Of a DNA stretch of 64,000 nt, positions 1,084 through 60,194 are shown one piece after another. A model generated the notes under the pieces. That model searched no databases and was not told where the DNA came from. It saw only the letters and a list, made by a program, of their open reading frames with translations. The translations under genes and the position numbers were made by a program. Source of the stretch: Macrostomum lignano (taxonomy: Eukaryota); the NCBI GenBank assembly GCA_002269645.1, contig NIVC01000137.1, forward strand, positions 248,001 to 312,000. Reading direction: 5' to 3'. The stretch's first letter is position 1; the number at the start of each line of letters is the position of its first letter.

Positions 1084-1355
1084 CATACATGCGCAACCCC
1101 CCTGATTTACACTGGCCATGCGACTTACTTTTTGACCAAAAATGCGACTTACCTGTGAAAAAACCCTAAACCAAAAGTAACGCAGTTTTGGGTAAACGGC
1201 AGGAGTAACTATGACTGTCTTATCAGCCATAAATGCCTCGGCATCTAATTAGTACTACGTCCGTATTCTTTGGGGTGGCATTTTTGCGACTTACCCCTGG
1301 TCCACAATTTACGGTGGCCAGATCGGCCAGGTCGGCCAGCAGTTGCGCATGTATG
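1084..1355 (+). mobile_element. Non-autonomous DNA transposon (MITE family A, copy 1), hAT/P-type
   Basis: Perfect 14-bp TIR CATACATGCGCAAC (1084-1097) / GTTGCGCATGTATG (1342-1355); 8-bp TSD GTTCCAAG at 1076-1083 and 1356-1363; subterminal TGCGACTTA motifs near both ends. Confidence 0.92.
1190..1253 (+). other. 28S rRNA-like fragment (R2/I-PpoI target region) inside MITE A copy 1
   Basis: GGGTAAACGGCAGGAGTAACTATGACTGTCTTATCAGCCATAAATGCCTCGGCATCTAATTAGT versus conserved eukaryotic 28S GGGTAAACGGCGGGAGTAACTATGACTCTCTTAAGGTAGCCAAATGCCTCGTCATCTAATTAGT (recalled); about 53/64 identical ungapped. Confidence 0.85.
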
Positions 1356-3414
1356 GTTCCAAGCAAAAAAGTGAGAAGTGTTTTCTGAGTTAATTCATTT
1401 TCTAGCAAAGTGAAGTAGAATGGTACACCATATATACTACTGAAAGTAGAGAACCAAGAAGAAAGAATACAAAGTAGACCTTAATAATGCATATAGAATA
1501 CCAGAGGCCATGGCCCTCCACTGATCCCAGAAATGCTCAGGACTAGGAAGGGAATACATACAATACAATGTATATACTAGTGGGAGCAATAGTAAAAATG
1601 CTACAAGTACAAAGTAGGAATGCTACTGATATAAAGGTTAACTAATACTGATAGTAATACTTGGACTTATACTAAGAATAGTTCTTAGAGTAATACTTAT
1701 ACATATATTTAGATCCAGTTATTCAGACTAATACTCAGATTAATTCTAAGAAAATAGAGGTTTAGCCCTAGGACAACTTTGGTAGCAGTATCTAGGATAG
1801 TTAGAGAGAGGAAACAAAGAGCACTAATTATAGCTATAGGTGACAGCAGTGTGAGGAATCATTAAAGACAAAAGTTTACCCTTAGTATAGAAACAACAAC
1901 TTACTTTTTACATAGATAGGATTAGAAAGTTTACGCAAAGGGTATAATCACAAAGATGCTAAATTGCCAACATTTAAGAAAACAGTTCCATCAGAAAAAT
2001 TGTTTAAAAGGAAAATTGACTGCATGCTAAATAGACAACCTTGCTTTTCTAAAAAATGATGACTTATGGGTATGGGTATTCTGGGTAATCATGTTATAGT
2101 CCTTTTTGCATATGAATCAATTCTATAAAAACAACTTTGTGCAGTTTCTCCTTTAAGAGCTTTTTAATGCCCTTTATAGTACACTTTTTTGAAATATAAG
2201 AGTCAAAATTCATAGCAAAAACATTCATTGTATGTTTTTTTAGGTTTTAGTTTCCAAAATCTCTTTTTCAGGATCAAAAAGAACTTGAAAGGAAAGTGAT
2301 TTGGCTGCCATCAAGAGCTGGAAAATGCATTGAGAACTGAGCTGCCAGAGAGTCTCACAGTTGGAATTGAGACATTGTTTTGAAGCTTGGTTTCATTGCA
2401 TGAAAAATTGCATGAAATTGTCTGGAAATTGAGAATGTCATTAGGTTAATGCTTATGTAGGTATAATTTTGGGCAAATTGGATGAGCAGAAATGGGATTT
2501 TCTGCCAACTTATTATTATTAAACAGTCCTTATATTGTAAATAAAATATTCATTGCTAAAATAAAATATTTTACTAGGATGAGCCAAAAGTTTATACAAT
2601 TTGATTTTTAACTTTTTAAATTAATTTTCGTCTATAGAAAAGCTTAAAAGCAGCAACTACCTACTGTATTATTGACTAGCCTATAATAATCACTTTTTAG
2701 CTTCAGCATAGCTCAGTTTCCTAAACTTTGCCTAATTAAGCCAACAAATGCATTCAATGAAATTTTCAAGAACTGAATAATAAATAATTTTGCCTTAAGC
2801 TACTTTTTGCAAGACACAAAGCAACTAAGGCACACTCAAAATTATTGCAGCTAATAGGCCCTTATATACCCTCTAAGTCATCAATACATATAATACATAG
2901 GGCCTAAGTGGTTCTCACTTTGCTAAGGATAAATAAGCCAAGGTCAGGTCAATCCCTGCTACTAATGGTGATGCCATTCTTTAAGCCCCTGATTTTTGAA
3001 GATAAACTAGACTATAGCATGCGCAAACTACTACTTATCATGCTTGGGTGCAACTTAGGGATTCACCCAGCCATTTCTATTGGCAACAAACACATATAAG
3101 TTGCTATTGGACAGAATAGTAGTCAGGTGATTGCTCTCAGCCAATAGCGACTTACATGTGTGTGTTGCCAATAGAAATGGCTGGGTGAATCTCTAAGTTG
3201 CGCACATACATGCGCAACTGCTGGCCGACCTGGCCGATCCGGCCACCGTAAATTGTGGCTGACCAGGGGTAAGTCGCAAAATTGAGTCAACCAAAAACAG
3301 AAAAACACAAGAACCAAGAAAGGCAAGAGGAAAGCGAAATAAAGAGCAGTTCAGGGAAAATCGTGAAGCAAAAGAAAAACTATTCGCAAAAGAAGCAAAC
3401 TAAGTTGTAAAAAT

Positions 3415-4470
3415 AATCAGGTAAGTCGCAAAAAGGATCAGGTAAGTCGCAACAGGAATCAGGTAAGTCGCAAAAGGGTTAGGTAAGTCGCAAAAAGGAT
3501 TAGGTAAGTCCCAAAAAGGATTAGGTAAGTCGCAAAAAGGATTAGGTAAGTCGCAAAAGGGTTAGGTAAGTCGCAAAAAGGATTAGGTAAGTCGCAAAAA
3601 GGATTAGGTAAGTCACAAAGGGTTAGGTAAGTCGCAAAAGGATTAAGTAAGTCGCAAAAAGGATTAGGTAAGTCGCAAAAAGGATTAGGTAAGTCGCAAA
3701 AAGGATTAGGTAAGTCGCAAAAAGGATTAGGTAAGTCACAAAGGGTTAGGTAAGTCGCAAAAGGATTAAGTAAGTCGCAAAAAGGATTAGGTAAGTCACA
3801 AAGGGTTAGGTAAGTCGCAAAAAGGATTAGCTAAGTCACAAAGGGTTAGGTAAGTCGCAAAAAGGATTAGGTAAGTCGCAAAAAGGATTAGGTAAGTCGC
3901 AAAAAGGATTAGCTAAGTCACAAAGGGTTAGGTAAGTCGCAAAAAGGATTAGGTAAGTCGCAAAAAGGATTAGGTAAGTCGCAAAAAGGATTAAGTAAGT
4001 CGCAAAAAGGATTAGGTAAGTCGCAAAAGGGTTAGGTAAGTCGCAAAAGGATTAGGTAAGTCGCAAAAAGGATTAAGTAAGTCGCAAAAAGGATTAGGTA
4101 AGTCGCAAAAAGGATTAGGTAAGTCACAAAGGGTTAGGTAAGTCGCAAAGGGTTAGGTAAGTCGCAAAAGGGTTAGGTAAGTCGCAAAAGGATTAGGTAA
4201 GTCGCAAAAAGGATTAAGTAAGTCGCAAAAAGGATTAGGTAAGTCGCAAAAAGGATTAGGTAAGTCACAAAGGGTTAGGTAAGTCGCAAAGGGTTAGGTA
4301 AGTCGCAAAAGGATTAAGTAAGTCGCAAAAAGTATTAAGTAAGTCGCAAAAAGGATTAGGTAAGTCGCAAAAGGGTTAGGTAAGTCGCAAAAGGATTAGG
4401 TAAGTCGCAAAAAGGATTAAGTAAGTCGCAAAAAGGATTAGGTAAGTCGCAAAAAGAAGCAACTAAGTCG
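3415..4470. repeat. Minisatellite, 19-21 bp unit GGTAAGTCGCAAAAAGGATTA, about 50 copies
   Basis: Direct tandem array; the unit contains GTAAGTCGCA, the reverse complement of the family A subterminal motif. Confidence 0.95.
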
Positions 4471-4614
4471 CAATAAGAGGGAAGTAAGTCACAATCAGAG
4501 GCAATCAGGGGGTAGTAGGTGCAAGTGTGGCAGGAGAGCAAACAGAATAGAAGCCTTCAACCACAGACAAGATCTTTGAAATCAGAAGCCCGCGTCATTT
4601 CTTAAACTCTGGAG

Positions 4615-4660
4615 CAGGGGTTGGCAAACTCCGGCTCGCGAAGCCCCTCTATCTGGCCCT
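4615..4660 (+). mobile_element. Isolated hAT (Charlie-like) terminus
   Basis: CAGGGGTTGGCAAACTCCGGC resembles typical hAT-Charlie ends; no partner TIR found; a similar end CAGGGTTTGGCAAA at position 11. Confidence 0.4.
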
Positions 4661-4709
4661 CGCCCCTCGGGTTCTTTGAAACTTCCTAACTACGAGTAGC
4701 AAGGTTGGT

Positions 4710-5395
4710 GTCTCTTCAACTCTCATCTCTCTCTTCTTCTCTACCTTGCCTCCCCTCTTCTCTCTCTCCCCCCTTTTCCCTCTTCTGTCTCCTCTCATTT
4801 TTACTCTCCTCTCTTCTCCCCTTTCTCTCTACCCTTTCTCCTCAATGCCCTCTTCTCTCCTCTTATCTTCAGCAAAAATATGTGCATATTTTCTTACTTC
4901 AAAGTAGAGGGAATAGAAGATTAGAGATAAGCAAACAGAGGAGAGGCGAGCGATGCGATGGGAGAAAAGATAGAAGAGGAGAGAAAAGCTGAGGGAGGAA
5001 AAAGAGATGAGAGAGAAGAGGAGATGAGAGAAAAGAGGAAAGAAAAGATGATGGATGAGATCAGAAGAGAGGAAAGAGGAAAGAGGAGAGAGTAGATGAG
5101 AGAAGAGAGGATAAAGAGGAGATGAGAGGAGAGTGAAGAGAGGAGAGATGAGAGAGTAGAAAAGAGAGGAGAGATAAGATGAGAGAGTAGAGTGGAGAGA
5201 GACGAGAGGGAAGATAAGATGAGAGAGTAGAGTGGAATGGAGAGAGACAAGAGGAGAGATAAGAATGTAGAGAGGAGACAGAAGAGATAGGAGAGGAGAG
5301 GAAAGAGAGGAGAGAGGAGAGGAAAGAGAGAAGGGATAAGGGATGAGAGAGAAAAGAAAAAGAGGATGAGAAGATTGAGGAATGGAGAGAATTTG
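4710..5395. repeat. CT-rich then AG-rich low-complexity tract
   Basis: Polypyrimidine 4710-4860 followed by polypurine 4920-5395; source of the Leu/Ser-rich spurious ORFs. Confidence 0.9.
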
Positions 5396-5817
5396 CAAAG
5401 GCCTCAAATCTTAGTTTAACATGCATTACTCCCATCTTTGCCTTTTTCCTAACTGTTAACAAGTTTTTGTTTGAGCATGACTTCAAATTTAGAATCTATG
5501 CAAAAATAGTTCCGGGAATTAGAATTCAGTGGTTTAAAAATCTGTGGGTTTTCACAGCTTGTATCTCTACTGGATTCGTATTCTGCATCTGATGAGCCAT
5601 CTGAATCAGGGCTCTCATCTTCCATGCCAAATCGTCTAGCAAATCGTTCTTGAGCTATAGGTCACACTGTATTCACTTCACTTACTTCTGGACATTCATG
5701 AATCATGACTTTTGTAGTATGCTCACTACACTGTACTGACAATTTACTAATTGCTTCATGCCGCCACTAGATGACATACTGATTAGCTGTTATAAAAACG
5801 CGGAATCTGCACGCAGC

Positions 5818-5881
5818 ACTAATTAGCTGGCGAGGCATTTAGCTTTAAAAATATGGTCATAGTTACTCCTGCCGTTTACCT
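5818..5881 (-). other. 28S rRNA-like fragment inside family A copy 2
   Basis: Reverse complement AGGTAAACGGCAGGAGTAACTATGACCATATTTTTAAAGCTAAATGCCTCGCCAGCTAATTAGT; same length and spacing as the 28S segment. Confidence 0.8.
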
Positions 5882-7340
5882 AAAGTTTTTGCTTGGCTCT
5901 TTCATAGGTAAGTCGCATTTTTTATCGAAAACTAAGTCGCACGGCCAGCGTAATTTCAGAAGTTGCGCATGTATGGTTGCGCATGTATGCTACTTATTAT
6001 TGCGGTATCCTATTGCACAGTCTAATGAAGCTTGCATGCTACAGAGAAGGTTGCAAAGAAACTAATTCTAGTATCCCATGAGTTAACACCTTAGCAGCTA
6101 AGAGCTAAGATAAATGTGGCAACTTTGAATCTTTGCCAGACCAGTTGGCTAATTTTCTTAAGTCAATAATCACTCAAGATAAGAAATGGGGCTACTATAA
6201 AAACCCAAGCACATCTAGGTTGATGCTTCTAGACTAAAGAAACATCTAGCTGCCTAATGTAGAACCTCCACTGTGGCCCATATGCCACTAACTAACTAAC
6301 TAACTAACTAAATAAGTAATCCAGTGCCTCACCCTTGAGCAGGCTCTTAGGCCACTAATGAAAAAAGATTCCAGATTAGGAGTGTACTCAGGTACACAAG
6401 GTTTTTAAGCTAGAGTGAGAGTGACTATGGCCAACAAGCCGAGTAGTCAACACTAGTTGTACAAAGGGCTAGCTCTACGCCCTGCCTTCGGGGCATTAAG
6501 CCTACTCTAAACTCAAATCAAAACCTCTCCAGGGCCAGAGGGGGTTGAGTGAACCAATCAGGGAAGCCCATGCCTTCTCTAGGTTAGGAAGTCCCAAATA
6601 CTGGTCATTTGACTGCCCCCACAGCCGTGGCAACCCAAAGGAGCCTTCCCCCTCCAACTAAACCCTAGGTACTCTTGCCAGACAGTCTCTTATCTTTGAA
6701 GTGGCAGGAGGGCTAATTGCTAGGACTATTTCACCCTTTGCTTCGCCAACCTACCATTTCTATTAGGCCATGCCAACAGCCCCATCCTGGTCAGACTCAG
6801 TCATGGTTCTAGCACACTAGCTTTAATAGAGTTGCTAGCTATTTGCTCAGAGGACATTCCAAGTGAGACCGTCAGAGTATTAACTGGAACAGGTATAGGC
6901 CTACCTTCCTTCTTCCTATACAACTACCTACAGCCCTTCCTGATTGACTATTATCTTCCAACCCAGCCTACTAACTCATTAAAAGCTTTCAACCAGGCAG
7001 AGACAAATGTTACAGGGCTATTGTGGTTAGGCGTCTTTATGCAAGATATACCATACTCTAAATCATATATATATAGGCCTAGGTATAGGCCTATTATATG
7101 CCTAAAAATTTGGGCATGCATTAGCCTTGTATACCTAAATTTAGGTGTGCATAGTTGGCATGCATGACTCTTAAGAAAATAGATATACCTATACCTAATA
7201 GGTATACCTACCTATAGATATAAGTAGACAAAAGGCATCTGACTGTCTATCATGATTTAAGAATTTTTTTGGTGGCATGTTCATGTTGCTAGTAGAATCA
7301 AAGCATATGCCCTATGGTGTCTTGGCACAATGCAGTTTTT

Positions 7341-7722
7341 AGGTAAATGGCAAGAATAACTTGACTGTCTTATTAAGCCCTATTGCAGCCAATGGCCATT
7401 TTCGTGGACGGCGTCCGGCGCAGATTGGCCTGGTGGCAGCGCGGCGCGCGGTAGCGGTGCGGCGCAGCGTGTGGCAGTGGCGCGCGGCGGCGTGGTGTGG
7501 GGGCATGGGCAACTGGCGGCAACTAAGGGCCGGGTCAATGTCGATTGATGCGGGCCATTGACTGACTAATTGAACCAAATCACTGATCCTGGGGACTGGC
7601 CGTCTGGCCCTGGTGCGGTACGGGTAGATGTCTGGCGCGGGAAAGGGGGGCGCGTCCAGTGTGGTTCAGACCTTGGCTGCAATAGGGTTATTTAAGGCTA
7701 AATGCCTTATCATCTAATTAGT
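7341..7722 (+). other. Degenerate 28S-like core split by a MITE
   Basis: AGGTAAATGGCAAGAATAACTTGACTGTCTTATTAAG [insert] TTATTTAAGGCTAAATGCCTTATCATCTAATTAGT; preceded by AATGCAGTTTTT as in copy 1 (AACGCAGTTTT); no family A TIRs found. Confidence 0.65.
7378..7687. mobile_element. GC-rich MITE (310 bp) with CCC/GGG termini, piggyBac-like ends
   Basis: 15-bp perfect TIR CCCTATTGCAGCCAA / TTGGCTGCAATAGGG; flanks TTATTAAG and TTATTTAAG form an imperfect duplication containing TTAA. Confidence 0.75.
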
Positions 7723-8124
7723 ATTAGTACACTAGGCCTATGCTTGTATTTGGTATAAAGTCAACATGTTCTAATGTCACGTTGCATTTTTGAGCTAAAA
7801 TTTTAAGCCCCACATTGCATGTCTACAGGTTTTACTACACTTATTCCAATAGGGATAAGTGTGCATGTGATGTGTGCATGCACGTGATGCACATCTAGTA
7901 TGCACTTCATAGAATCACATGAAAGAGTTAATGTTATTGTTAGGCCCCTAAGTGGAAAAAAGATTAAAAAAGGGAGTGACCATGAATCTATGATCACAGT
8001 CGCAATCACAAAAACTGTGATCACAAGGAAAAAATCATACACTAGGCCTAGTCTTTTGCCAATCATGATTTGTGAATTTCACCATGCTTTTTTTCAAGTC
8101 ATAGGCCTAGGCTAGCACAACCAA

Positions 8125-18062: not shown

Positions 18063-22892
<4,830 letters not shown>

Positions 22893-35765: not shown

Positions 35766-35867
35766 TAAACCGAACTCCTCAAAGTCTAAACCATATCTAT
35801 CAGAGACTAGGTCCAGTACAGCAACAAGCCCAGCAATCACTAACAGAGCCCCAGCATGCGCACTCAC

Positions 35868-36449
35868 CTGAAAGGGATCGCAAGCGAGCGGTAGACCATC
35901 CCAATCAAGCCGATCAAAGCTACCAGGCTGACCAGGCGGGGCGTACAGTGCTCTCCAGAGTTGCAAACTGTGAATAGCGGCTGACGGGGTGAGGACTCGA
36001 TGACTGGGCTGGTAAAGCTCATTCTTTATACCGGCCAGTTTTAATATATTCCAAACGCACAGGCCGCGACTTTTTAAATCTGCAGCGTCTCGTTCGGCCG
36101 GTCCGTTGCTAAGGAAGCTAATAAACAAGCCGGAGTAACAGTGCACCGCTAATCGCCTTAGCAACGCGTCCGTGAACTCAAACTGAGTAGGATATTGTAA
36201 TAATAATTGATGCACGCAATCTAGAAATTGCAGAAATATTGGAGACCGCTCGTTCGCGTCCCGACCGGAGCAACGGTCGGCGAATTTGTGCCCGAATTCG
36301 AACCATTCCCGATTGATCAGCAGGCGGAAACCGGCGATGCTGCGGTAGTAGGGATCGGCTATGAGCTGGCACAGGCTGGTGAGCTGCGGGGTCCGATCCC
36401 AACCGTCTGAGCAGTGCACCAGCACCGAGCGGCCCTCGGACACCAGCAC
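35868..36449 (-). CDS. MTMR3/4: Myotubularin-related phosphatase, catalytic exon
   Basis: VLVHCSDGWDRTPQ (CX5R), DPYYRSIAGF..LINREWFEFGHKFADR, SPIFLQFLDCVHQL..QYPTQFEF; acceptor CCTCAG|36449, donor CAG|GTGAGT at 35868; 582 nt, phase 0/0. Confidence 0.95.
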
Positions 36450-36594
36450 CTGAGGATTTGAGCCGGTGAATCAAGGCTACAATGCAAGCGCAGCGAGCGA
36501 AGAAGCCAGCACGCACTAGCTCACACGGGGTGTACAGCAACCTTGAGTATCTTAATTACGACCCATATGCACGTAGTGTGCAACTCATACAGCA

Positions 36595-36965
36595 GGCAAC
36601 ATTTTGGGCCACAGCAGGCAACATTTTGGCGCCACAGACAGGCACTCATTTTGGCGCCACAGACAGGCACTCATTTTGGGCCACAGACAGGCACTCATTT
36701 TGGCGCCACAGACAGGCACTCATTTTGGGCCACAGACAGGCACTCATTTTGGGCCACAGACAGGCACTCATTTTGGCGCCACAGACAGGCACTCATTTTG
36801 GGCCACAGACAGGCACTCATTTTGGCGCCACAGGCAGGTACTCATTTTGGCGCCACAGACAGGCAATCATTTTGGGCCACAGACAGGCACTCATTTTGGC
36901 GCCACAGACAGACACTCATTTTGGGCCACAGACAGGCACTTATTTTGGCGCCACAGGCAGGCACT
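36595..36965. repeat. 24-25 bp intronic minisatellite GCCACAGACAGGCACTCATTTTGG(C)
   Basis: Tandem array sharing the CACTCATTTTGGCGCC core with the MITE C minisatellite. Confidence 0.93.
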
Positions 36966-37079
36966 AAAATGGGACATTTCAACAGTTACCATATTAAATC
37001 AGAGCAGCACAGCTGTGCTATGAAAGTTAAGCAAAGATGCCTGTGGTTAGTTAAGACAAGTTTAAAACATTTTCATTAC

Positions 37080-37649
37080 CTGAGCTATTCTACTAGAATG
37101 CCTAATCAACGAGCTCAGCAATGTCAGCCAGCCGGCCCGTTCGATGTCGCTTAAGAAGCTCGCATTCTGAGCGGCTGCGGCGGCCGCGGCGGCGGCAGCA
37201 GTGGCGGAGCTGACACCAGACGAAGTAGTTGACGTTGGCGGCGCCGTACAAACTGGAGCGGCAGGCGCAGGCGCCAGAGATACAGTAGAATAATTACCCA
37301 CAGATGTTGCGGATGAGGCTTGCAACGCTTCTGTTGTCGCGGTCGCCACAGTTGACGCAGATCCATTATTACCGCTAGCATAACTACTATAAGTAACAGT
37401 AGTAGCACTAGCAGAGCTATTAGAAGAAAACGAATTCGAGGCGACAGAGGCTAAGGAGCCATCGCGACCGCAACAGGCAGCACCTAAAGCGGCTCGCAGG
37501 GCGGCAAAACTATTCCTAATAGCGTGGATATTTGGCAGGCCCAGGTATTCGATCTCCGTGCCCGTATAATATTCGGGCCGTTCGTAGCCGCCGCCTCGGG
37601 TGCCATTGCCAAGCGCGGCAGTGTAATGCCTGGCGTCCACTATTAGCAC
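37080..37649 (-). CDS. MTMR3/4: Myotubularin-related phosphatase, exon 3
   Basis: IVDARHYTAALGN..RGGGYE..EYY....EYLGLPNIHAIRNSF and FLSDIERAGWL; AATCCAG|37649 acceptor, CAG|GTAATG donor at 37080; 570 nt. Confidence 0.93.
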
Positions 37650-37734
37650 CTGGATTAGGTAATTCGGGTCAGTGTATGTTTTATTGCTTATTCAACTCAG
37701 ACTGTATTTAACCACCATTTATAAATTTCGCAAC

Positions 37735-38015
37735 GTAGCTAATAGAAAATGGCAACTCAGCTAATAGAAAATGGCAACTCAGCTAATAGAAAATGGCAAC
37801 TCAGCTAATAGAAAATGGCAACTCAGCTAATAGAAAATGGCAACTCAGCTAATAGAAAATGGCAACTCAGCTAATAGAAAATGGCAACTCAGCTAATAGA
37901 AAATGGCAACTCAGCTAATAGAAAATGGCAACTCAGCTAATAGAAAATGGCAACTCAGCTAATAGAAAATGGCAACTCAGCTAATACAAAATAGCAACTC
38001 AGCTAATAGAAAATA
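37735..38015. repeat. 22-bp intronic minisatellite AATAGAAAATGGCAACTCAGCT
   Basis: About 13 near-perfect copies filling most of the 37650-38033 intron. Confidence 0.96.
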
Positions 38016-38033
38016 GCAATCGCTGGCACAAAC

Positions 38034-38579
38034 CTTTTTAGCAGCATCGGAAGTCAGCATTCGCACCAATTTCTCGTCGGGTTCGCAACGCCAGCCGAGA
38101 AATCCAGCCAACCCAACTAGCGGTTGGGCCGAGCGCGCCAAAACGGCGCCATTAGCCCGGCAGCGCCAAACTGGCGCCGGAAATCTACCCAGAGCTCGGT
38201 AGCCGCTAGACTGGCGCAATTCGTCTTCCGTAACGGAGGCCGGAAGCAGATGCAGCCTAGGATAGGACTGGCACAAAGACCTGTCGGAGTTGAGTTTAGT
38301 AACGCACCAGCCGCTATTATCGCCCAGGAAGCCGAGTCGTTTAGCTTCCTCTATAAAAGATTTCTCAGTGTAGTGCGCCGAGTAGCCCATGTCAACAGGC
38401 TCAGCATCGGCCTGCTGCTGCTGCCGCCTTCGGATCGTCTTTTTGAATAGGTAGGGAAAATAGGTGGCGCCCTGGCAGTCCAAAAGAGGACTTAATCGGG
38501 TCGGATCGAGTCGTTCGGCCCACTGGTTGAGCTCGGGTAGGGAGTCGAAGTACAGTCGGGGCAGGTTGCAGCGCCCGTC
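38034..38579 (-). CDS. MTMR3/4: Myotubularin-related phosphatase, exon 2
   Basis: DGRCNLPRLYFDSLPELNQWAERL (end of PH-GRAM), then WCVTKLNSDRSLCQSYP..LLP, YRALGRFPAPVWR, LARSAQPLVG..GWRCEPDEKL; CCTTAG|38579 acceptor, AAG|GTTTGT donor at 38034; 546 nt. Confidence 0.9.
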
Positions 38580-40720: not shown

Positions 40721-42024
40721 CGAGGGGCACTAGATAAGTTTTTAGCTGCAGTCAAACTGTTTATTCAAATTAGGCCATATTTTCTGAGCATATTGAATAA
40801 GAAGTTTTATCATGATCCCCAAAGTTTCATGCACCTAATTGTCACCATTCTCTCACTGTTGCATTTTATCTCAACAAGGTCTATGAATCTTTCAGCACTG
40901 TAATGGAGCTCAATTGTGAACACTTTTGTGCCATGATTTTCTATGATTTTAAGAGCAGCTTGACATTTCACCAGTGCCACAAGCGGCTGTCTGCTGCCTT
41001 TCCTAACCTTGCGCCATCCATCGCCACCGTCACCGCCTGGTTCTGGGAGTTCAAGTGTGGCCAAGACAGTTTGGAAGATGAAGGTCGAACCAGCCAACCT
41101 GTTTCAGTGACGACACCTGAAACTATCGACCGCATGCGTTGCATGATTGAGGCTGATTGGCAAGTGACGTATCAAACGATTGAGGCATGTCTTGGTATCT
41201 CATTGCTGACAGTTGCTTCTATCCTTTGTGATCACCTTGCTGTCTGCAAGCTGATCAGTCGCTGGGTGCCACATTTGCTCACCACTGAGCAGAAGCAGGC
41301 CCGCATGAGCTGGTGCCAGGAAATGCTGGACAGGTTTGGTGGAGGGACGTCGAAGTCTGTCACAGACATTGTCACATGTGACAAAATGTGGGTGTATTGC
41401 TATGAACCCAAGTGGAAATGCCAGTCGCGTGTGTGGGCTTTTGAAGATGAAGCCCTGCCAACCAAGGTTGTCAGGGGTTGGAGCACTGGCAAGCAAATGG
41501 TGGCAACTTTCTTCCAAAAGACTGGCCATATTGCGACTGTAGCACTCAAGAGCCAGCACACAGTGACTGCAGATTGGTACTGCACCATCTGCCTACCGTG
41601 TGTCATCAGCAGCCTTAAAGAGGCGTGGCCAAAGTGCGGCGTTTGAGGTCTCTGGCTGCACCAGGACAATGCCAATGCGCACATTGCGAATCGAACTCAA
41701 GAGTTTCTACAGACGGTGGGCTTCCAACAGCTTAGTCATCCACCATATTCACCTGACCTGGCACCATGTGACTTTTTTTGTTTCCATTCATCAAGAATTC
41801 CATGCGAGGGTGCCAATTTTCCTCCGCCAAAGAGGCTGTTGATGCCTATAGATTGGCCGTTGAGGGGTATCCCACTCAGAGTGGCGCCACTGCTTTGAAA
41901 CTTGGTTTGAGCAGATAAGGGGATGCATCCAAGCTGATGGAGAGTACTTCGAAAAGCTCTGAAAGTTTCATCTTTATAATTGTTACATATTGACTGCAGC
42001 TATAAACTTATCTAGTGCCCCTCA
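40721..42024 (+). mobile_element. Full-length mariner element (1304 bp) with inactivated transposase
   Basis: TA|CGAGGGGCACTAGATAAGTTTTTAGCTGCAGTCAA left TIR and matching right TIR ending 42024; ORF from 40903 with WVPHLLT, LHQDNA, HPPYSPDLAPCDF; premature TGA at 41644-41646 and a later frameshift. Confidence 0.93.
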
Positions 42025-50820: not shown

Positions 50821-50914
50821 TATTTTTTGTTGCTGTTGTTCTATAATTACCTACGAGTATAAGCTGGTAATTTTACAAATTCAAAGTTACAAATCCTTAG
50901 TTACGAAATCGTAC

Positions 50915-51425
50915 AGTTTCTGACGTTTCAACATCACGCTATGCAAGATTGGAGACCTGCACTGAAGCAACAGTAAGGTCTGTGAAGCTGATTTTTTACA
51001 TAAACACAGATTTCAGATGGTAAATTGCAAAAATAAAATTGGTTATCAGTTGTTGTTGGGTATTTCGTAGTTCTAGGGGTAGAATGATTTAGCCTGTATG
51101 CGAAATCCTGCATGCAGTTACTGACGTTTCAACATCACGCTATGCAAGATTGGAGACCTGCACTGAAGCAACAGTAAGGTCTGTGAAGCAGATTTTTTAC
51201 ATATACACAGATTTCAGATGGTAAATTGCAAAAATAAAATTGGTTATCAGTTGTTGTTGGGTATTTCGTAGTTCTAGGGGTAGAATGATTTAGCCTGTAT
51301 GCGAAATCCTGCAGTTACTGACGTTTCAACATCACGCTATGCAAGATTGAAGACCTGCACTGAAGCAACAGTAAGGTCTGTGAAGCTGATTTTTTATATA
51401 AACACAGATTTCAGATGGTAAATTT
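50915..51425. repeat. ~200-bp tandem repeat, about 2.5 copies
   Basis: TGACGTTTCAACATCACGCTATGCAAGATT recurs at about 50921, 51122 and 51318. Confidence 0.92.
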
Positions 51426-51956
51426 GAGTTTCGACTAAAAAATCGTTTTACATTCAAGTGTTTTCTGCTAAATCGATCTTTTTGTTATTTTTATCTTATC
51501 GGGAACTGGAACTGAAAAACCGGTCATATTTACGGTAGACAAATTTGAATTTCATTTACGTATTTTATAACGTGATTTACGTAATTTACGTAATTTACGT
51601 AATTTTATTTTATGAATTATGGAATTAGGCCTGACACTATATATTTTGCAAAGTATAACGAAGTGTAACTATATATTTTTTCAGCGCCATGCGCCATGTG
51701 CACCGCCAGAGCATTTCCAATTTTTCCTTGTACGCCGTGTGCGCCGTGTGTGCCAAAAAAAGGGCCAATTTGCGCCGGAAAATTCACCAAAAACTGCCAC
51801 CTTCCCAGCTATGGGCTGCAATAGGCATAATCATACTGCGCAACCTCCAAAATTTGGTCGGCCGTGCGACTTAGTTTTAACAAAAATGCGACATAGTTTT
51901 TGGCCAAAAATGCGACTTGCATGTAAAAAAACTGTAAAGCAAGATAACGCAGCATA

Positions 51957-52020
51957 GGGTAAACGGAAGGAGTAACTATGACTCTCTTATTAAACCTAAA
52001 TGCCTCATCAGCTACTTAGT
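51957..52020 (+). other. 28S rRNA-like fragment inside MITE A copy 3
   Basis: GGGTAAACGGAAGGAGTAACTATGACTCTCTTATTAAACCTAAATGCCTCATCAGCTACTTAGT; includes exact GGAGTAACTATGACTCTCTTA. Confidence 0.85.
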
Positions 52021-53495
52021 ACTACTACTTGGGTGTTTTTTAGGTGGGCATTTTTGCGACTTCCTTGGTTGGTCGCCAAATCGGTCGGCCAGATCGGCCG
52101 ACTGTTGCGCATGTGGGTCGTTCTCAAAATCAGGAATTACGCGATAAAACAAGAAAAAAAATTTTCGACCCTGAACCAGCCTTTCATGCAAAACAAGCAA
52201 CAGGGTAAACGTAGCTGTTGAAAGAAAAGTACTTTATTTATCATTCGAAACAGTGAAATTGGTACGGTTGTCAAAGCAACTGACTACTGAGTCATTTTAT
52301 CAATTTAATATTTCCATTTCTTCGATGTAACGCTAAGACGGTGTCATGTTTTGTGAAAAAATTCAATGGGAAAGAAACATCAGAAATAAACTATTTTGCA
52401 CAGGAAGGAAGAAAGAACATTAGAATTTGCTTCTTATTAAAGAATGACTGCTTAGTGATTTGTTCCTTGACTTAAACACAATCTTTCATCACTTAAACGC
52501 ATCACTGTTCTAGTTACTAGCAGTTGAATTGTACAAATATATTGCTAGTTTTTTAGGTGAAAGCAATGCATATGGCGTCTTTTGGCGTTTTTTTGTGCCT
52601 TATAATGTGATCTTTGTATTTTTGATGTTTTTATATGGATTAGTGCACCACAGTTGTTGCAATATTTTTTTATACAATTAATTGCTACTAAGACAGGCAC
52701 AAGCCAATAAACGTTGGGACCACAGTTTTGCAACACTGGAATAAGATAATGACCAAAAAAAGGAGTAAAGTGGAGAACTGGGTGTCTTACAGGAGCATTT
52801 TTTGCATTTTTAAATACATTGCCTCTGAGCCCCACAATTAAGTAAAACATCTGAAAAAACATGCACTTTTGCATATGTCAAACCATTGGGACTGCCATCA
52901 TGGGTCACTGAAAGAACTGATTGGGCTGAATTTTTTGGAGAATGTTTTACTAGGTGTTGTGTAGGAGCATTAATTTTTTAAAAGAAAATATTGCATATAA
53001 GCCACACAAAATATGTTAACAATTTAGAAACCAGGCAATACATAAAAACTGTAATTTATGAGTAAGGGATTCAGTAGCATTTTAAACTTGAAATTAAAAT
53101 TGATGTTTTAAATTAGATATTAGATCTCAATGACTGAAAGAATATGAATCAAGTGGCTTTATTTGTAGAAATTGGTCCATCAAAAAAAGTTTTGGCCATT
53201 TGGAAAATTTTACTTTGAAATGTACAGTTTCTTGCAAAAAATCCTGAATTTTGTGTCCCAATAAGCAAGTAGCTATTGGCATTATTTAAATGAAAGATAC
53301 AGTTTAGACTCTATGCAGATTTAGCACAAAATAGACTGCAAAATTTGGATATCATTTTTGAAGCTTTTCCACTAGGTCCTACTGGCAGTTGAGGCATCTA
53401 ATAGTGACATTGCTGGGTTTGTTGCCCCTAGTAACATCTAAGTGATTCCCAATCACATGATTGTCCAAATTAGACTGCAGCTGTAATTGCTTGAA

Positions 53496-56400
53496 ATGAC
53501 TGCAAAACACAAAAAATCCCACCATCTGTTTCAAGCAATGCCGTTCAAGCCGACTGAACGACAAAAGCGGCGTGAAAAGAGGAAAAAATATATTAAAAAA
53601 AATTTTGGCTCCCACAGTAGCTACCTAGAGCACATGCGGCGGCAACAGCAGAAGTATAGGGACAAAGGCAATCGCAAGGACAAGGCAGGGTCCAGCACTT
53701 CGGCAGAGATCCCCCAGCGATCCTTGGCAAGATCGGCAGCGGCGTTCAAGCGGGAGAATGCCAAGCTAAAGGCCAGGGTGCACCTGCTTGAGACTGCTGC
53801 CAAGCAGCGCAAGACAAGCAAAACCTGCCTGCGAGTGAAACTTCACCGCGCGAATAAGGAATTGGCGGCAAAAAGTTGCCGGCTTCAGACTTTCACCAAC
53901 ATAGCTAGCCATGTGAAGAGAGCGCTGCAGTCAGTCAGACGGTTCAATAACACCCGGCGAGTAATCAAGGCTGCCTGTCTAAACGCCCACGAGGCAGGAC
54001 GGAAGGCCGTCATGGCCTTCTTTGGCGCCTCCGCGAAGATCTTGAAGCAGCCGAGAGCGCCGAAGATAAATCTGCTTGTGAGCGTCGTCCAGGAGTACTT
54101 TTGCCAGGACGAAAACTCGCGGGCCACCTCCTCCCGGAAGGATTGCATCTCCAAGAGATTTGGCGAGGAGAAGGAGACAAAGCAGAAGCGTTATCTCCTG
54201 AGCTCAGTCTCCCTGCTCCATGCAAAGTTCCTTTGGGAGTATCCTGGTGTGAAGATCAGCCGGGCAACATTTAACCGCTGGAAGCCATGGTATGTCAAGA
54301 GGGCTCGTCTGTGTGACCGAGACATGTGTATGTGCATAAAGTGCACTAACACGGAGTCCTTAATCAAAGGCATGCACATTGCTGGACTTCTTCACAGCCA
54401 CCACATTACTAAAGTGTTGAATGAAATGGTCTGCGACATGGAATACGCTGACTGCCTGCTGCGCAAATGCGACGAGTGCCGTCGCAAGTCATTTGTAGTC
54501 ACGGAGACAGCTGAGGCTGAGCCACAGGTTGTGTACCGCGTTTGGAAGCCTCGGACAGATGGACGCAGCGGCTTGGATGTGGTCAAAGAGACGGCATCAT
54601 GCAAGACGGCTATCAGCATGCTGATGGTGCAACTAGTCGACTTTGCGGGCCACTTTATGCGGATGCGGAACCAGTATCGTGCAATCCGCCAGGTTAAGGA
54701 TACTCTGCAGCCGGGACAGCTCCTGTTGCACATAGACTTCTCCGAAAACTATACGGCGAAGTACCACAAAGAGGTACAGGCGGCGCACTTTGGCGACAAG
54801 GATCAGGTGGTGCTTCATCAAGGCGTGGCCTACATGGCTGGACATCAACCTTGCTCATTCGCAACGGTATCAGGAGAGAGGAGTAAGACGGCGGAGGCCA
54901 TCGCCGCTCATCTACAACCAGTCCTTCGCCACTTTAAGGAGAAGCACGATGTCGATAAGGACGCCTTTAGCCAACTGGACCAGATCGTCATCGTCTCTGA
55001 TTCGCCATCCAGCCAGTATAGAAATCGCAAGATGGTTTTCTTATTCGACCGCCTGATGAAGATCATGAGGGTGTCAAGCTGGCGTTGGATCTACACAGAG
55101 GCCGGACACGGCAAGGGTGCTGCGGATGGAGTTGGAGCGGCTATCAAACGCCGCTGCGATGAAGTCGTGGCTAGCCGGCAGGACGTTGTAACACCTCAGG
55201 ATGTTATGGAAGCCGTCAGATCGGGTAGCCCTCTGCACATACTCACATGGTTGGTTCAGCCAGAGGACATGAACTATTTCACAAGCATCATCACCTTCGT
55301 AGGTGAGGACCTCTGCGGCATGCCAGGCTCGAAGTCGATGCACGACGTCTCAAGGACTGATGGTGGGCCGATCACTTACCGTCAGCTGTCCTGCATGTGC
55401 CCTGGTACAGCAGTAGCCTGCCCATGCCACGAGATGAAAGTGTGGGCGCCGCTGATGCTGCCGGAGGCGCCAGCTCCTGATCTCCTGAGCTCAGTCTCCC
55501 TGCTCCATGCAAAGTTCCTTTGGGAGTATCCTGGTGTGAAGATCAGCCGGGCAACATTTAACCGCTGGAAGCCATGGTATGTCAAGAGGGCTCGTCTGTG
55601 TGACCGAGACATGTGTATGTGCATAAAGTGCACTAACACGGAGTCCTTAATCAAAGGCATGCACATTGCTGGACTTCTTCACAGCCACCACATTACTAAA
55701 GTGTTGAATGAAATGGTCTGCGACATGGAATACGCTGACTGCCTGCTGCGCAAATGCGACGAGTGCCGTCGCAAGTCATTTGTAGTCACGGAGACAGCTG
55801 AGGCTGAGCCACAGGTTGTGTACCGCGTTTGGAAGCCTCGGACAGATGGACGCAGCGGCTTGGATGTGGTCAAAGAGACGGCATCATGCAAGACGGCTAT
55901 CAGCATGCTGATGGTGCAACTAGTCGACTTTGCGGGCCACTTTATGCGGATGCGGAACCAGTATCGTGCAATCCGCCAGGTTAAGGATACTCTGCAGCCG
56001 GGACAGCTCCTGTTGCACATAGACTTCTCCGAAAACTATACGGCGAAGTACCACAAAGAGGTACAGGCGGCGCACTTTGGCGACAAGGATCAGGTGGTGC
56101 TTCATCAAGGCGTGGCCTACATGGCTGGACATCAACCTTGCTCATTCGCAACGGTATCAGGAGAGAGGAGTAAGACGGCGGAGGCCATCGCCGCTCATCT
56201 ACAACCAGTCCTTCGCCACTTTAAGGAGAAGCACGATGTCGATAAGGACGCCTTTAGCCAACTGGACCAGATCGTCATCGTCTCTGATTCGCCATCCAGC
56301 CAGTATAGAAATCGCAAGATGGTTTTCTTATTCGACCGCCTGATGAAGATCATGAGGGTGTCAAGCTGGCGTTGGATCTACACAGAGGCCGGACACGGCA

Positions 56401-56936
56401 AGGGTGCTGCGGATGGAGTTGGAGCGGCTATCAAACGCCGCTGCGATGAAGTCGTGGCTAGCCGGCAGGACGTTGTAACACCTCAGGATGTTATGGAAGC
56501 CGTCAGATCGGGTAGCCCTCTGCACATACTCACATGGTTGGTTCAGCCAGAGGACATGAACTATTTCACAAGCATCATCACCTTCGTAGGTGAGGACCTC
56601 TGCGGCATGCCAGGCTCGAAGTCGATGCACGACGTCTCAAGGACTGATGGTGGGCCGATCACTTACCGTCAGCTGTCCTGCATGTGCCCTGGTACAGCAG
56701 TAGCCTGCCCATGCCACGAGATGAAAGTGTGGGCGCCGCTGATGCTGCCGGAGGCGCCAGCTCCTGATACTGCAACGAGTGGACTCGGATGTGGGCGTGG
56801 AGGTGGACGTGGACGCCGAGGTGGACGAGGACGCGGAGGTGGACGCCGAGGTGGACGAGGACGCGGAGGTGGACGTGGACGTGCAAGTGGTGATGAAAAG
56901 GCGCTGCTCCCTTATGACTTTTGCAACGAACCTTAG
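53496..56936 (+). CDS. Sola2-like DDD transposase with tandemly duplicated catalytic region and C-terminal RGG tract
   Basis: Uninterrupted ORF; CMCIKC zinc motif, HIDFSENY (D1), VSDSPSSQYRN (D2), GHGKGAADGVG (D3), each present twice; ends in GRGGGRGRRGG repeats. Confidence 0.85.
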   Translation: MTAKHKKSHHLFQAMPFKPTERQKRREKRKKYIKKNFGSHSSYLEHMRRQQQKYRDKGNRKDKAGSSTSAEIPQRSLARSAAAFKRENAKLKARVHLLETAAKQRKTSKTCLRVKLHRANKELAAKSCRLQTFTNIASHVKRALQSVRRFNNTRRVIKAACLNAHEAGRKAVMAFFGASAKILKQPRAPKINLLVSVVQEYFCQDENSRATSSRKDCISKRFGEEKETKQKRYLLSSVSLLHAKFLWEYPGVKISRATFNRWKPWYVKRARLCDRDMCMCIKCTNTESLIKGMHIAGLLHSHHITKVLNEMVCDMEYADCLLRKCDECRRKSFVVTETAEAEPQVVYRVWKPRTDGRSGLDVVKETASCKTAISMLMVQLVDFAGHFMRMRNQYRAIRQVKDTLQPGQLLLHIDFSENYTAKYHKEVQAAHFGDKDQVVLHQGVAYMAGHQPCSFATVSGERSKTAEAIAAHLQPVLRHFKEKHDVDKDAFSQLDQIVIVSDSPSSQYRNRKMVFLFDRLMKIMRVSSWRWIYTEAGHGKGAADGVGAAIKRRCDEVVASRQDVVTPQDVMEAVRSGSPLHILTWLVQPEDMNYFTSIITFVGEDLCGMPGSKSMHDVSRTDGGPITYRQLSCMCPGTAVACPCHEMKVWAPLMLPEAPAPDLLSSVSLLHAKFLWEYPGVKISRATFNRWKPWYVKRARLCDRDMCMCIKCTNTESLIKGMHIAGLLHSHHITKVLNEMVCDMEYADCLLRKCDECRRKSFVVTETAEAEPQVVYRVWKPRTDGRSGLDVVKETASCKTAISMLMVQLVDFAGHFMRMRNQYRAIRQVKDTLQPGQLLLHIDFSENYTAKYHKEVQAAHFGDKDQVVLHQGVAYMAGHQPCSFATVSGERSKTAEAIAAHLQPVLRHFKEKHDVDKDAFSQLDQIVIVSDSPSSQYRNRKMVFLFDRLMKIMRVSSWRWIYTEAGHGKGAADGVGAAIKRRCDEVVASRQDVVTPQDVMEAVRSGSPLHILTWLVQPEDMNYFTSIITFVGEDLCGMPGSKSMHDVSRTDGGPITYRQLSCMCPGTAVACPCHEMKVWAPLMLPEAPAPDTATSGLGCGRGGGRGRRGGRGRGGGRRGGRGRGGGRGRASGDEKALLPYDFCNEP
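54193..56768 (+). repeat. Apparently identical 1287-bp in-frame tandem duplication
   Basis: 54193-55479 repeats at 55480-56768; ORF-track offsets are exactly 1287 (e.g. 54392 vs 55679); 429 codons. Confidence 0.95.
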
Positions 56937-57048
56937 GTAGCTCATCTCAGCTCTCTAACTATCCTATATATCCTATATACTAAAAATGAAATCCTATCCT
57001 AATTGTACGTGCTATATACCATTAAAGTAGGGGTTGATTTGCTCACAT

Positions 57049-57579
57049 TTATATATTAAATAAAGTTAGGCGCAAGTAGTACAAGTAAGGTGAACCATTC
57101 GTATTTAAATCCGAATGCGGAACGAGGCCTCCATCGGCTGCGGCAGAGACAAGGGAGTATGGCCTCCTTGGAGTCGGCATCTCCAGCGGCGTTGAGGTGG
57201 GCGGTGCAGCAGGCTCCGCTGTTGCAGCAGGATGGACTGCGGCAGCGAGCTGTTGTATTAGCTGTTGGTTCTGCTGCATCTTCGCGGTCATCAATGCGTT
57301 GACATCGATGCCAGGAGTTGTCGGGGTGAGGGTGGCAGCAGTGACCGGCGCAGTAGGAGTAGCAGCCAGTTGTTGTGGGCCCCGGTCGGTCCCGGCGAGG
57401 TCGTAGCGGTCGTTAAAGTTGGGTGTCAAAGAGGCATCAGGACCAGTGGGGGCTCCAGAACTAGTGCCAGCGGTGGCAGCAACAGCGGTCGGAGTGGGCG
57501 GCATGGTATGCGCCAGAGCAGTAGTGGTTGCAGAAGTGGAGGTGGTGTCGCCGGCATCCATCGAACGCATAATAACCAT
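57049..57579 (-). CDS. Ala/Thr/Pro-rich ORF of unknown function inside the Sola2-like element
   Basis: 176-aa ORF in a GC-rich island; IDVNALMTAKMQQNQQLIQQL is loosely like the N-terminus of retroelement Gag proteins; no diagnostic domain. Confidence 0.35.
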   Translation of the reverse strand: MVIMRSMDAGDTTSTSATTTALAHTMPPTPTAVAATAGTSSGAPTGPDASLTPNFNDRYDLAGTDRGPQQLAATPTAPVTAATLTPTTPGIDVNALMTAKMQQNQQLIQQLAAAVHPAATAEPAAPPTSTPLEMPTPRRPYSLVSAAADGGLVPHSDLNTNGSPYLYYLRLTLFNI

Positions 57580-60194
57580 GAATTATTTGAAGAGTTGTGA
57601 ACGCTCTGCTACCAAATTTGTCGCTTGGACAACAAACTAATGAGCAGTTAGTAGATGGAGTGTATTTCGTGGCAGTGGAAGCAAAAGGTAAAGCAGAAAG
57701 AAAGGAACATGGACGCGCCTGAGGGGAGCAAAGCTAAGAGAAACCTATAACGGAGAGGAGGTCTTGTACATAGATATAAAAGTGGTAAACGCAAAGGATG
57801 AGCTAGGTCACTATTGCTGGAATTGCTTGGCTAAACGGTAGGGATGAGGTCATAGACAATAAATAAGGTTAGCTGCAACTAATTAATATGTTAAAGGGAC
57901 TAAAAGTACATGAAAACGTAAGTCGAAGGTGAAGGCCCAAAAGAGGCGAAGTATTGGAGGAATATAATCCGACACCCATGATGTCAAAACTCGGTCCATC
58001 ACATCCTGTTACATTTCTTTAAACTAGTGTTAAATGCACACTATGTTTAAAATACTATCATTCTTCATGCACTATTTTTATTGATTCAGGGGCAGTCAAG
58101 TCCAAGCATGACTGTTTCGATAGCTTCATTATATAGTTCCTTCATGCCTACATATACAGATAAATGTTTTTTAATCTACCCATTTCATCAAATTGTTTTC
58201 AGTTGTTTTTGTCCTGCAGTAACGTTTGTAAATCCTTTTGGATTGTAATACTTTAGCATAAACCAGTCAGTATACATGTACTTTTTAAATTTCTTCTTGT
58301 TTAATAATATTGTATCCATTCATAGCAGACTAGAGTATATAGCTGTTTGCAAGACTACATTTCTTGCAAGAATAAAAAATATAAGACAAGAAAATGTCAT
58401 ATTTATAATAAATAATTACATTTAGAGTCAAACATAGATAATTCTACAGAATATCAGGCTGCATTCATATGTACCATATATTAAGATGTCCAAACTCCAA
58501 TATTCCATGCATATTTACAATGCAACAAAGCTTTTTGCAATCATATTTCATTTCTGTGCTTGATTTGTTTTGTCTCTTCTTTCCAGTTTTTGCATCTTCT
58601 TGAACTTTTTGAGACTATACACAATGCACACGAATTTTCTCAGCTCTTTATATGCCATGTGTGCTATATTTAAACTGCCTTTGTAATTTCATACTTACTA
58701 TAAAGCTTCTCTATTATGCACTCATGCTTTAATTTTTGCTGTAGATGTATAAATATATTCTTTTTCCGTCTGAAGCAGACTTCTGAGTTAAAATATGAGT
58801 ACATATAGATCTTCCTATAGATGTTTGAATCATCCAAAAGGATTATGTGATACATAAACTTTGCAATCATTCTTGTAACCACAGATATGAATTAGCGCCT
58901 AGCGGGATACTAAATTTCGCGCATAAATGCACATATCAGTCGTTCACGCTAAGAAATGTAGCTAACAATTTTCAGATAATGTTTTGAATTACTATATTTG
59001 CGTTATCCAACGCAATGCGCATTGTAATTAATTTGTAAATAGCTAGAAAATGTCACGAACAAAGCAATGTAATACTTGAGATAGTACCCTCAGGTTGCGC
59101 GACGCACAAATTGTTCAAAGTTAAACGAATGCGTATCATAGGTATACAGTCATATTATAACAAAATATGTTTATTTAAGGGTTCGGCGCTCCGTAAACAG
59201 AAAACTAATTAAATGAAATTATTATCTATTTTAAAAGAATAAATTACTCTATAGAATTTGACGATGATATGCTGGTGTATTTCTAGTTTTCGTGCAATAA
59301 AATAATTCCGATAATAATATTTAAACAAAGCGGCATTCCATGCTGTCCTGACATTTTGTTGTGGTTTACGACACAAAATACGTTTGTTGCATCTATAATT
59401 CGTTCTTAGGTAAAGATTGAGTCACGAATTTTTAAAGAAAAAAAAACGGAAGCATAAGCAGTGCCTGATTTTGAGAACGACCCATGTATGGGCATAATTG
59501 CAAACTTTTCAATTGCAAAGAATAATTTTTAGGCAGTTGTTATTTGTCTGGTGACCAGACGAATGGCCTTTTTGCTATTTGTCCGGGTAAATTGCTAACA
59601 CAAGTATCTATTTGTTTCGTGATGAATATTGTGGCAGGCGGGTTGCCACTAAAATTTTAATACGTCTAATAATAATAATAATAATAATATTTAATTTGAC
59701 TCCCAATTCCCGGAAATTTTTCCTTGTTACTTTTCCAACGGTTGTGTCTCCTTTTTCCCGGTGTTGTTTTGTGTTCTCCTATTGTTGTCCCTCCGGTTTG
59801 CCCCGCCGTTGGAATGTTTTTGTCTTTTGTTGATATTTCCCAATTTTGCTACCTTATGCGTTGTGATTTTTTGTCCATCAGGTTGCCCACGGGCTCGCCC
59901 ACCCTGTTGTCCAGTCATCCGTCCCAACTCCCGCCCTGGGATTGAATTTAATATCTTTTCTTATTTAAGTTTCGGTTTCTGCCGCGATGTTTTTATCCTT
60001 CCTTCGCTCTCGCTCCTTGTTTAGTTGTAGTTAATTTTATTCATTGCGCAGTGTCGGCATCCGTCGTCGCCGGCCCCCTTTTCTCGTTCGCAACAAAATA
60101 AATTTCCAACGCCTGCTAACAAAACGTTTTAATGAATTATAATTAATAAACAAATAACGCCGACGAATTAAATATTAACTACTCTTTATCCGTT

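Follow-up and report, generated by a model that had tools for sequence, protein, structure and literature searches.

A hAT-like non-autonomous transposon family of Macrostomum lignano carrying a captured 28S rDNA fragment over the R2, Pokey, and I-PpoI target region

Why should a cut-and-paste transposon that lies outside the ribosomal genes carry a piece of 28S rDNA in its middle, and is that piece a mere passenger? The question is raised by a 64-kb window of Macrostomum lignano DNA (the whole stretch analyzed, 64,000 nucleotides), in which three diverged copies (E1, E2, and E3) of one transposon family, here called family A, have a 28S-derived core. To our knowledge, the 28S stretch in question is the most heavily parasitized site in eukaryotic rDNA, being used by R2, Pokey, and I-PpoI-type introns. 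A first-pass annotation of the window had proposed that a cut-and-paste element captured the rDNA segment over this site and keeps it under constraint. The capture was borne out, with TIRs, 8-bp TSDs, and a single acquisition. The proposed constraint was borne out in part: the 5′ 25 nt of the segment are conserved beyond background, but its center and right flank are at background.

Family A is bounded by a 14-bp TIR, CATACATGCGCAAC, which is exact in E1 and E2. A scan of the window located exact CATACATGCGCAAC at 1084(+), 1342(-), 3205(+), 5962(-), and 5976(-), together with a copy carrying two mismatches at 52104(-), and the 9-mer core of the TIR occurs six times, against 0.42 expected. Perfect 8-bp TSDs surround four elements (E1, E2, E3, and a relative, E0, that has no core), with 32 of 32 TSD positions identical. 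The subterminal motif TGCGACTTA is found 51 times in the window (0.45 expected); each element has two to three copies, all in one orientation within the element, two near the 5′ end and one near the 3′ end, which is the layout expected of putative transposase-binding subterminal repeats. The generic target preference of hAT elements is nTnnnnAn, and the TSDs of family A and E0 (CTACTTAT, GTTCCAAG, GTTGCGCA, and GGCATAAT) fit it at 6 of 8 diagnostic positions, a count that covers only four TSDs. Because of the four perfect 8-bp TSDs, the short TIRs, the subterminal repeats, and these 6/8 target-site fits, the sequence features point to a hAT-like non-autonomous cut-and-paste family, the superfamily being putative. 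No hAT transposase was found by Pfam in the 19 open frames scanned out of the window's 80 of at least 110 amino acids. The family is small and non-coding (272 bp in E1 and 286 bp in E3), with three to four copies in 64 kb. Profile and single-sequence nhmmer searches found no copies in the window beyond E1 to E3 and an orphan core, and the core and TIR patterns had 0 matches in metagenome, viral, and prokaryote-genome collections, which hold no M. lignano genome.

Table 1. Family A elements, their 28S-derived modules, and associated insertions in the 64-kb window
Feature	Position	Strand	Description
E1	1084..1355	+	272-bp family A MITE, perfect 14-bp TIRs 1084-1097 and 1342-1355
E1 TSD	1076-1083 and 1356-1363		GTTCCAAG
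E1 subterminal motifs	1119, 1143, 1285		TGCGACTTA
E1 28S module	1191..1258	+	left flank 1191-1215, 15-nt center 1216-1230, right flank 1231-1258
E0	3039..5989	-	foldback relative without a core; 172 bp with E2 subtracted, which lies within its TIR
E0 ends	5976-5989 (right TIR)		right TIR same as family A; left TIR decayed; GTAAGTCGC motif
E0 TSD	3031-3038 and 5990-5997		CTACTTAT
E2	3205..5975	-	2.77-kb non-autonomous family A element, perfect TIRs
E2 TSD	3197-3204 and 5976-5983		GTTGCGCA
E2 tandem array	3401..4477	-	52.7 copies of a 21-bp unit with the subterminal motif (GGTAAGTCGCA on the + strand), next to the E2 3′ end
E2 28S module	5813..5880	-	
Orphan core, left half	7342..7377	+	decayed left flank and start of center
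Element B	7378..7687	.	310-bp GC-rich TIR element, TIR CCCTATTGCAGCC (CCCTATTGCAGCCAA), TSD TTATTAAG/TTATTTAAG (8/9 bp)
Orphan core, right half	7697..7727	+	
E3	51832..59490	+	286-bp family A MITE, 51832-52114 plus 59488-59490
E3 TSD	51824-51831 and 59491-59498		GGCATAAT
E3 28S module	51958..52025	+	
Nested element in E3	52115..59483	+	7,369 bp, not family A, 20-bp TIR GGGTCGTTCTCAAAATCAGG, 4-bp TSD ATGT

The coordinates first given for the three elements, each with its own 8-bp TSD, hold (Table 1), and two of them could be refined. The ends and TSD of E2 stand, but the element sits inside E0: its TSD GTTGCGCA forms the first bases of the right family A TIR of that relative. The core of E2 belongs to its family A 5′ end, the 3′ end resembles that of E1, and the interval between the two ends is occupied by a tandem array and GA-rich low-complexity sequence. 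The 3′ 80 nt of E2 are 94% identical to E1 and the 5′ 186 nt are 76% identical, a mosaic showing that subfamilies recombine. The 21-bp unit of the array contains TAAGTCGCAAAAAGGATTAGG and resembles a satellite-like expansion of the putative transposase-binding site. No transposase remnants were recognizable by eye among the nine E2 ORFs of at least 40 amino acids, and the 192-amino-acid ORF, the sole E2 ORF scanned, had no Pfam match. E0 itself (3039-3204 plus 5984-5989) folds into a near-perfect hairpin (MFE, -114 kcal/mol) and has no 28S module. Since this relative, with the same TIR and transposase-binding-type motif, transposed without a core, the core is not required for mobility. Sub-threshold Rfam matches of E0 to miRNA precursors (MIR399, MIR7502, and mir-3149) were also recorded.

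For E3, the outer ends and TSD likewise stand, but the true element measures 286 bp and is split by a nested element of 7,369 bp. A 1-nt deletion affects the left TIR of E3, and the right TIR breaks off after GTTGCGCATGT, where the nested element begins. The latter encodes a 1149-amino-acid ORF (53487-56936) with DDE-like motifs (HIDFSENY, SDSPSSQYRN, and GHGKGAADGVG) and an RGG-rich tail, for which no Pfam, NCBIfam, or PDB sequence match was found. This ORF was lengthened by a direct duplication of 1,287 bp start to start, in which 54193-54492 and 55480-55779 are 100% identical over 300 nt. The 4-bp TSD of the nested element would presumably fit a Sola-like superfamily. Two of the eight family A TIRs in the window are insertion sites themselves (5976-5989, E2 in E0; 52104-52114, the 7.4-kb element in E3). 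Both insertions lie in GTTGCGCATGTATG, roughly 10 times the expectation for 112 bp of target, and may reflect a hot spot or local hopping. Just upstream of E3, about three tandem copies of an approximately 200-bp unit (…TTACTGACGTTTCAACATCACGCTATGCAAGATTGGAGACCTGCACTGAAGC…) occupy 50900-51420.

The surrounding window is eukaryotic and transposon-rich. A near-intact LINE at 18131-22802 (-) has APE, RT, and a separate RNase H ORF, with ORF2 (APE and RT) at 19261-21879(-). This ORF2 is 99% identical to many M. lignano UniRef proteins with unrelated names; many of the annotated host "genes" are chimeras with the LINE, as this identity to variously named gene models shows. The intervals 35766-38579 (-) and 40903-41646 (+) contain exons of a gene for a myotubularin-related phosphatase (Pfam Myotub-related, E as low as 5e-52) together with an HTH_48 ORF of mariner type.

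The cores had been described as matching 28S helices 69 to 71, and a search of the whole 64-kb window with the Rfam eukaryotic LSU consensus fragment confirmed this for the three elements (nhmmer E=5.2e-10, 1.3e-9, and 5.2e-9). Besides these cores, nothing in the window fell below E=0.4; the next matches were the two halves of the orphan core, and the remainder of the window gave nothing below E=3.8. A 121-nt slice of E1 aligned with positions 2225-2313 of the LSU_rRNA_eukarya model (cmscan, 30.3 bits, E=4e-6), and E1 and E3 searched as whole elements aligned with positions 2255-2310. An upstream 28S extension to model position 2225 was dropped because the slice alignment was not reproduced with the whole element. 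The homologous part is estimated from these alignments at about 68 nt (65 to 70 nt), from the end of H68 through H71. In E1 to E3 it follows the pattern GGTAAACGG[C/A]AGGAGTAACTATGAC, 15 nt, then AAATGCCTC..CA.CTA.TTAGT, the right-flank pattern occurring four times in the window against 0.02 expected. The 15-nt spacer length first noticed in the three intact cores also holds in the orphan and in 28S. The flanks are identical to the 28S consensus at 23 to 25 of 25 positions (left) and 21 to 24 of 28 (right). In 28S, this stretch includes the I-PpoI site, the 28S sequence at R2 5′ junctions, and Pokey's single 28S site; R2 junctions and the I-PpoI site contain GGGAGTAACTATGACTCTCTTAAGGTAGCC, and the canonical 28S center is CTCTTAAGGTAGCC.

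No Rfam family reached its gathering score in the window, so that functional rDNA is absent from it. The LSU match (16 to 30 bits against a cutoff of 50) is confined to approximately 56 to 90 model positions, and this sub-threshold score and short homology rule out a functional rRNA or rDNA unit or an rDNA orphon. A likeness of the left-flank sequence GGTAAACGGCA to the reverse-complemented subterminal motif GGTAAGTCGCA (8/11) was also considered and dropped, as the best motif-to-28S matches are at chance level.

The history of the capture was read from a gap-free alignment of 68 columns between the four copies (E1 to E3 and the orphan) and the 28S consensus. All four copies differ from the consensus at the same eight positions (11, 33-36, 40, 65, and 66), and five of these eight, including a G>A in the middle of the left flank, carry the same derived base in every copy, derived states being judged against the Rfam 28S consensus. 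The boundaries of the module and its orientation relative to the asymmetric element ends are identical in all copies. Because eight positions differ from 28S in all four, the aligned sequences show that the fragment was captured once and was then inherited and mobile with the element, with no later conversion from rDNA. The alteration of the center is mostly ancestral as well (roughly TCTCTTATTAAGGCT against TCTCTTAAGGTAGCC in 28S). The earlier description of a center altered differently in each copy holds for the lineage-specific changes on top of this ancestral state, but most of the alteration is common to all copies.

The fourth copy, the orphan core, has no family A ends around it and is split by element B, whose insertion point corresponds exactly to the R2/Pokey/I-PpoI site of 28S. 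The chance of one insertion within 60 bp of the core centers is approximately 0.09, assuming about 100 transposon insertions in the window, a rough guess rather than a count, and the element B insertion is compatible with chance. The target of element B, TTATTAAG, moreover agrees with nTnnnnAn, the general hAT preference. The idea that element B is specific to cores was dropped, there being only one clear copy. A second B-like terminus at 51814-51826 abuts E3; the match covers 12 nt with no internal similarity and may be due to chance. Insertions of R2-type or other LINEs were found in none of the four cores, and the only inserted core is the one with the 310-bp TIR element B.

The conservation of this singly acquired fragment can be compared with that of the rest of the element. 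E1, E2, and E3 differ pairwise by about 24 to 27% where alignable, and the 32 of 32 identical TSD positions bound post-insertion decay below approximately 9%. Most of the divergence thus arose before insertion, in replicating lineages, in which selection acts on cis requirements. In the three-way comparison, columns are invariant at 12 of 12 positions in the TIR, 51 of 82 ungapped positions in the 5′ subterminal region (which has a further 33 gapped columns), 24 of 25 in the left 28S flank, 6 of 15 in the center, and 22 of 28 in the right flank. Taking three mobile sequences and assuming independent columns, the left flank exceeds the 62% subterminal background (Fisher p=9e-4), with a hypergeometric P=1e-4 for the 25 nt as a predefined block and, by shuffling, P=0.005 for any 25-column window reaching 24. 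It is the best 25-column window of the alignment; the best subterminal window reaches 20 of 25. The center and the right flank show no significant difference from the background. Exceptional conservation is confined to the left 25 nt (GGTAAACGGCAGGAGTAACTATGAC), which changed no more than the TIRs and the transposase-binding-type motif did while the lineages diverged by about 25%. The view that both flanks outlast the surrounding element is accordingly upheld for the left one (24/25) but not for the right (22/28, not significant), and a specially variable center is not supported (6/15 against 62%, not significant). The left block is not mutationally cold, since the immobile orphan copy has four to five changes in the same 25 nt. 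The rRNA helices H69 and H71 have not been kept: their pairs are formed at 63.5% (61% in shuffled sequences), and covariation is not in excess. What any constraint would act on is therefore the primary sequence, the simplest case being a DNA-binding site. From three copies, any role of the conserved part of the 28S fragment is putative.

The explanation we lean towards, with somewhat better than even confidence, is that a hAT-like non-autonomous family transduplicated the 28S fragment once, that its 5′ 25 nt are kept as a putative cis element, and that the cut site drifts. Under this model, a transposase supplied in trans would recognize the 14-bp TIR and the repeated TGCGACTTA motif, and the approximately 68 nt of 28S rDNA were built into the middle of the element in the ancestor of all copies. 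The capture probably took place through filler DNA copied during gap repair; alternatively, a copy resident in rDNA may have mobilized flanking 28S through a TIR-like sequence directly 3′ of the captured piece. The center, with the R2, I-PpoI, and Pokey cut site, was already altered in the ancestor and now drifts at the background rate, and the left 25 nt would be under purifying selection in the mobile lineages as a putative protein-binding site at the level of DNA and not of RNA structure. Against this model stand the small set of three mobile copies and one relic, the often patchy divergence of MITEs together with the E1/E2 mosaic (94% against 76%), the right flank that is not significantly conserved, and the dispensability of the core for transposition in E0.

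The same observations give some weight to a less probable but still substantial alternative, in which the fragment is a neutral passenger, captured filler without a role, and the conserved 25 nt are a sampling accident or a product of subfamily recombination. Gene-fragment capture by DNA transposons is common (PMC10946416), E0 transposed without a core, the right flank and center behave like background, and the comparison rests on three sequences of which two form a mosaic. What argues against a passenger is the invariance at 24 of 25 positions, improbable for the predefined block and for any window alike; the adjacent center, which differs at 9 of 15 columns, so that simple tract homogenization does not explain the pattern; and the decay of the same block in the immobile orphan.

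A bolder reading, which we hold as tentative and rather improbable, makes the 28S block a selected cis module of a family tied to the rDNA hot spot, in either of two versions that share this one assessment. In the first, the block would recruit the transposase or an rDNA-binding protein, such as an R2-type ZnF/Myb protein or a nucleolar factor. In the second, it would be left over from an ancestor resident in rDNA, with a TIR that mimics the 28S next to the captured piece. The right TIR on the + strand of the element, GTTGCGCATGTATG, matches 28S GACGCGCATGAATG at 11 of 14 positions in the right-end orientation (1342-1355), and GACGCGCATGAATG lies directly 3′ of the captured piece in 28S (Rfam consensus plus a published 28S primer). 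When both strands of 99 nt of 28S are searched, a match as good as 11/14 is reached by 0.4% of shuffled TIRs and 0.9% of random 14-mers from the window. This likeness is compatible with, though no proof of, an rDNA-resident element having been mobilized along with flanking 28S via a cryptic end, and would suit an affinity of the transposase for this 28S neighborhood equally well.

It is distinctly unlikely that the cores serve as decoys or landing pads, with flanks that bind R2 or another 28S-specific nuclease or transposase and a mutated center that blocks cleavage, or with the cores as insertion sites outside rDNA. In favor of this reading, the ZnF/Myb domains of R2 proteins contact an extended region upstream of the nick (bioRxiv 10.1101/2024.11.11.623112), the side on which the conserved block lies; the central site serves I-PpoI and Pokey; and element B interrupts one core exactly at the homologous position. 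Against it, all four cores are free of R2 and other LINEs, the element B hit is compatible with chance and its target fits the generic hAT preference, the benefit to a MITE is not evident, and R2 would have to be presumed in M. lignano. Docking and camouflage had been offered at first as roles of the segment, and nothing in the window speaks for either specifically.

The flanks could also be kept 28S-like by continuing gene conversion, with the several hundred rDNA copies as donors, or by repair templated on rRNA, and their closeness to the consensus and the abundance of the donor would suit this; the chance that it operates here is slight, as all four copies, the relic included, share the left-flank G>A and further derived bases at the edges of the flanks, and conversion tracts would have erased those bases and restored the center. 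The common G>A argues in particular against repeated conversion. Least probable of all is a function at the RNA level, in which module transcripts would mimic rRNA (an H69-H71 fold, snoRNA pairing, or escape from small-RNA silencing): blocks of 25 nt and of 9 to 14 nt identical to 28S could pair with the same guides, and small RNAs from this 28S region are reportedly abundant in other species, but the rRNA helices are not maintained and do not covary, Rfam scores are far below the gathering threshold, and an element of 272 bp would gain no protection from 25 camouflaged nt.

Parts of this picture are familiar from known systems. Family A resembles transduplicating DNA transposons (Pack-MULEs, gene-fragment capture by hAT, CACTA, and Helitron elements, and filler DNA in Ac/Ds-type gap repair) in the host fragment enclosed by intact TIRs, in its mobilization in trans, and in the spread of one acquisition through the family. 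It differs from them in that the captured piece is non-coding rDNA of approximately 68 nt within a 272-bp MITE and is in part conserved like a cis element. In Xenopus, the DNA transposon of the Tx1D/Tx1L pair contains the very sequence that a site-specific LINE targets. Family A likewise is a DNA transposon that disperses the target of a site-specific element, but no LINE is present in any of its four cores and the cut site is mutated. With R2 and I-PpoI, the module shares the same 28S stretch; unlike them, family A lies outside 28S, shows neither RT nor endonuclease nor intron features, and does not contain the intact cut site. An R2 or other R-element LINE or SIDE is ruled out by the TIRs and 8-bp TSDs, the lack of an ORF, and the location outside 28S.

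Pokey and mPok (piggyBac, Daphnia) are also a DNA transposon with MITE derivatives linked to the same 28S site. Pokey inserts into 28S at a TTAA site, its single 28S site (PMC3849761), and carries rDNA-derived IGS/ITS2 repeats in its non-coding region (PMC3849761; PMC10946416). In contrast to the TTAA TSDs that Pokey makes in 28S, those of family A are 8 bp long and lie at unrelated sites, and the 28S region is internal to the element; the rDNA-derived part of family A is 28S and that of Pokey is spacer. A Pokey or piggyBac element is ruled out, as the TSDs are 8 bp and none is TTAA. SINE28 and the 5S-rRNA-derived SINEs are mobile and contain rRNA-derived sequence, as family A does (PMC10946416), but they are retroposons without TIRs that have rRNA-derived heads or promoters, whereas family A is a cut-and-paste element with TIRs and TSDs. 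The presence of TIRs and the lack of a tail rule out an rRNA-derived SINE. A review table of rDNA-derived sequences in transposable elements contains only the Pokey IGS repeats, the 5S SINEs, and SINE28 (PMC10946416). The first-pass annotation was not aware of a description of such a family, in agreement with our literature search, which found no description of a TIR element or DNA transposon carrying this 28S region. The capture of host fragments by DNA transposons is already known; a TIR element with the R2/Pokey/I-PpoI region is apparently undescribed, as no description was found.

If the conservation turns out to be an effect of the small sample, family A would simply add to the captured host fragments of a flatworm genome rich in repeats. 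If the family is tied to the rDNA hot spot, it would be the first known case of a cut-and-paste family that both carries the R2/Pokey/I-PpoI target region and conserves it. Should the protein-binding side of the target be what is kept, the dispersed copies would create many pseudo-targets, which could titrate or misdirect rDNA-specific elements; such a family could also reveal a transposase that recognizes rDNA, and it would bear on the off-target risk and the specificity of R2-based gene-insertion tools.
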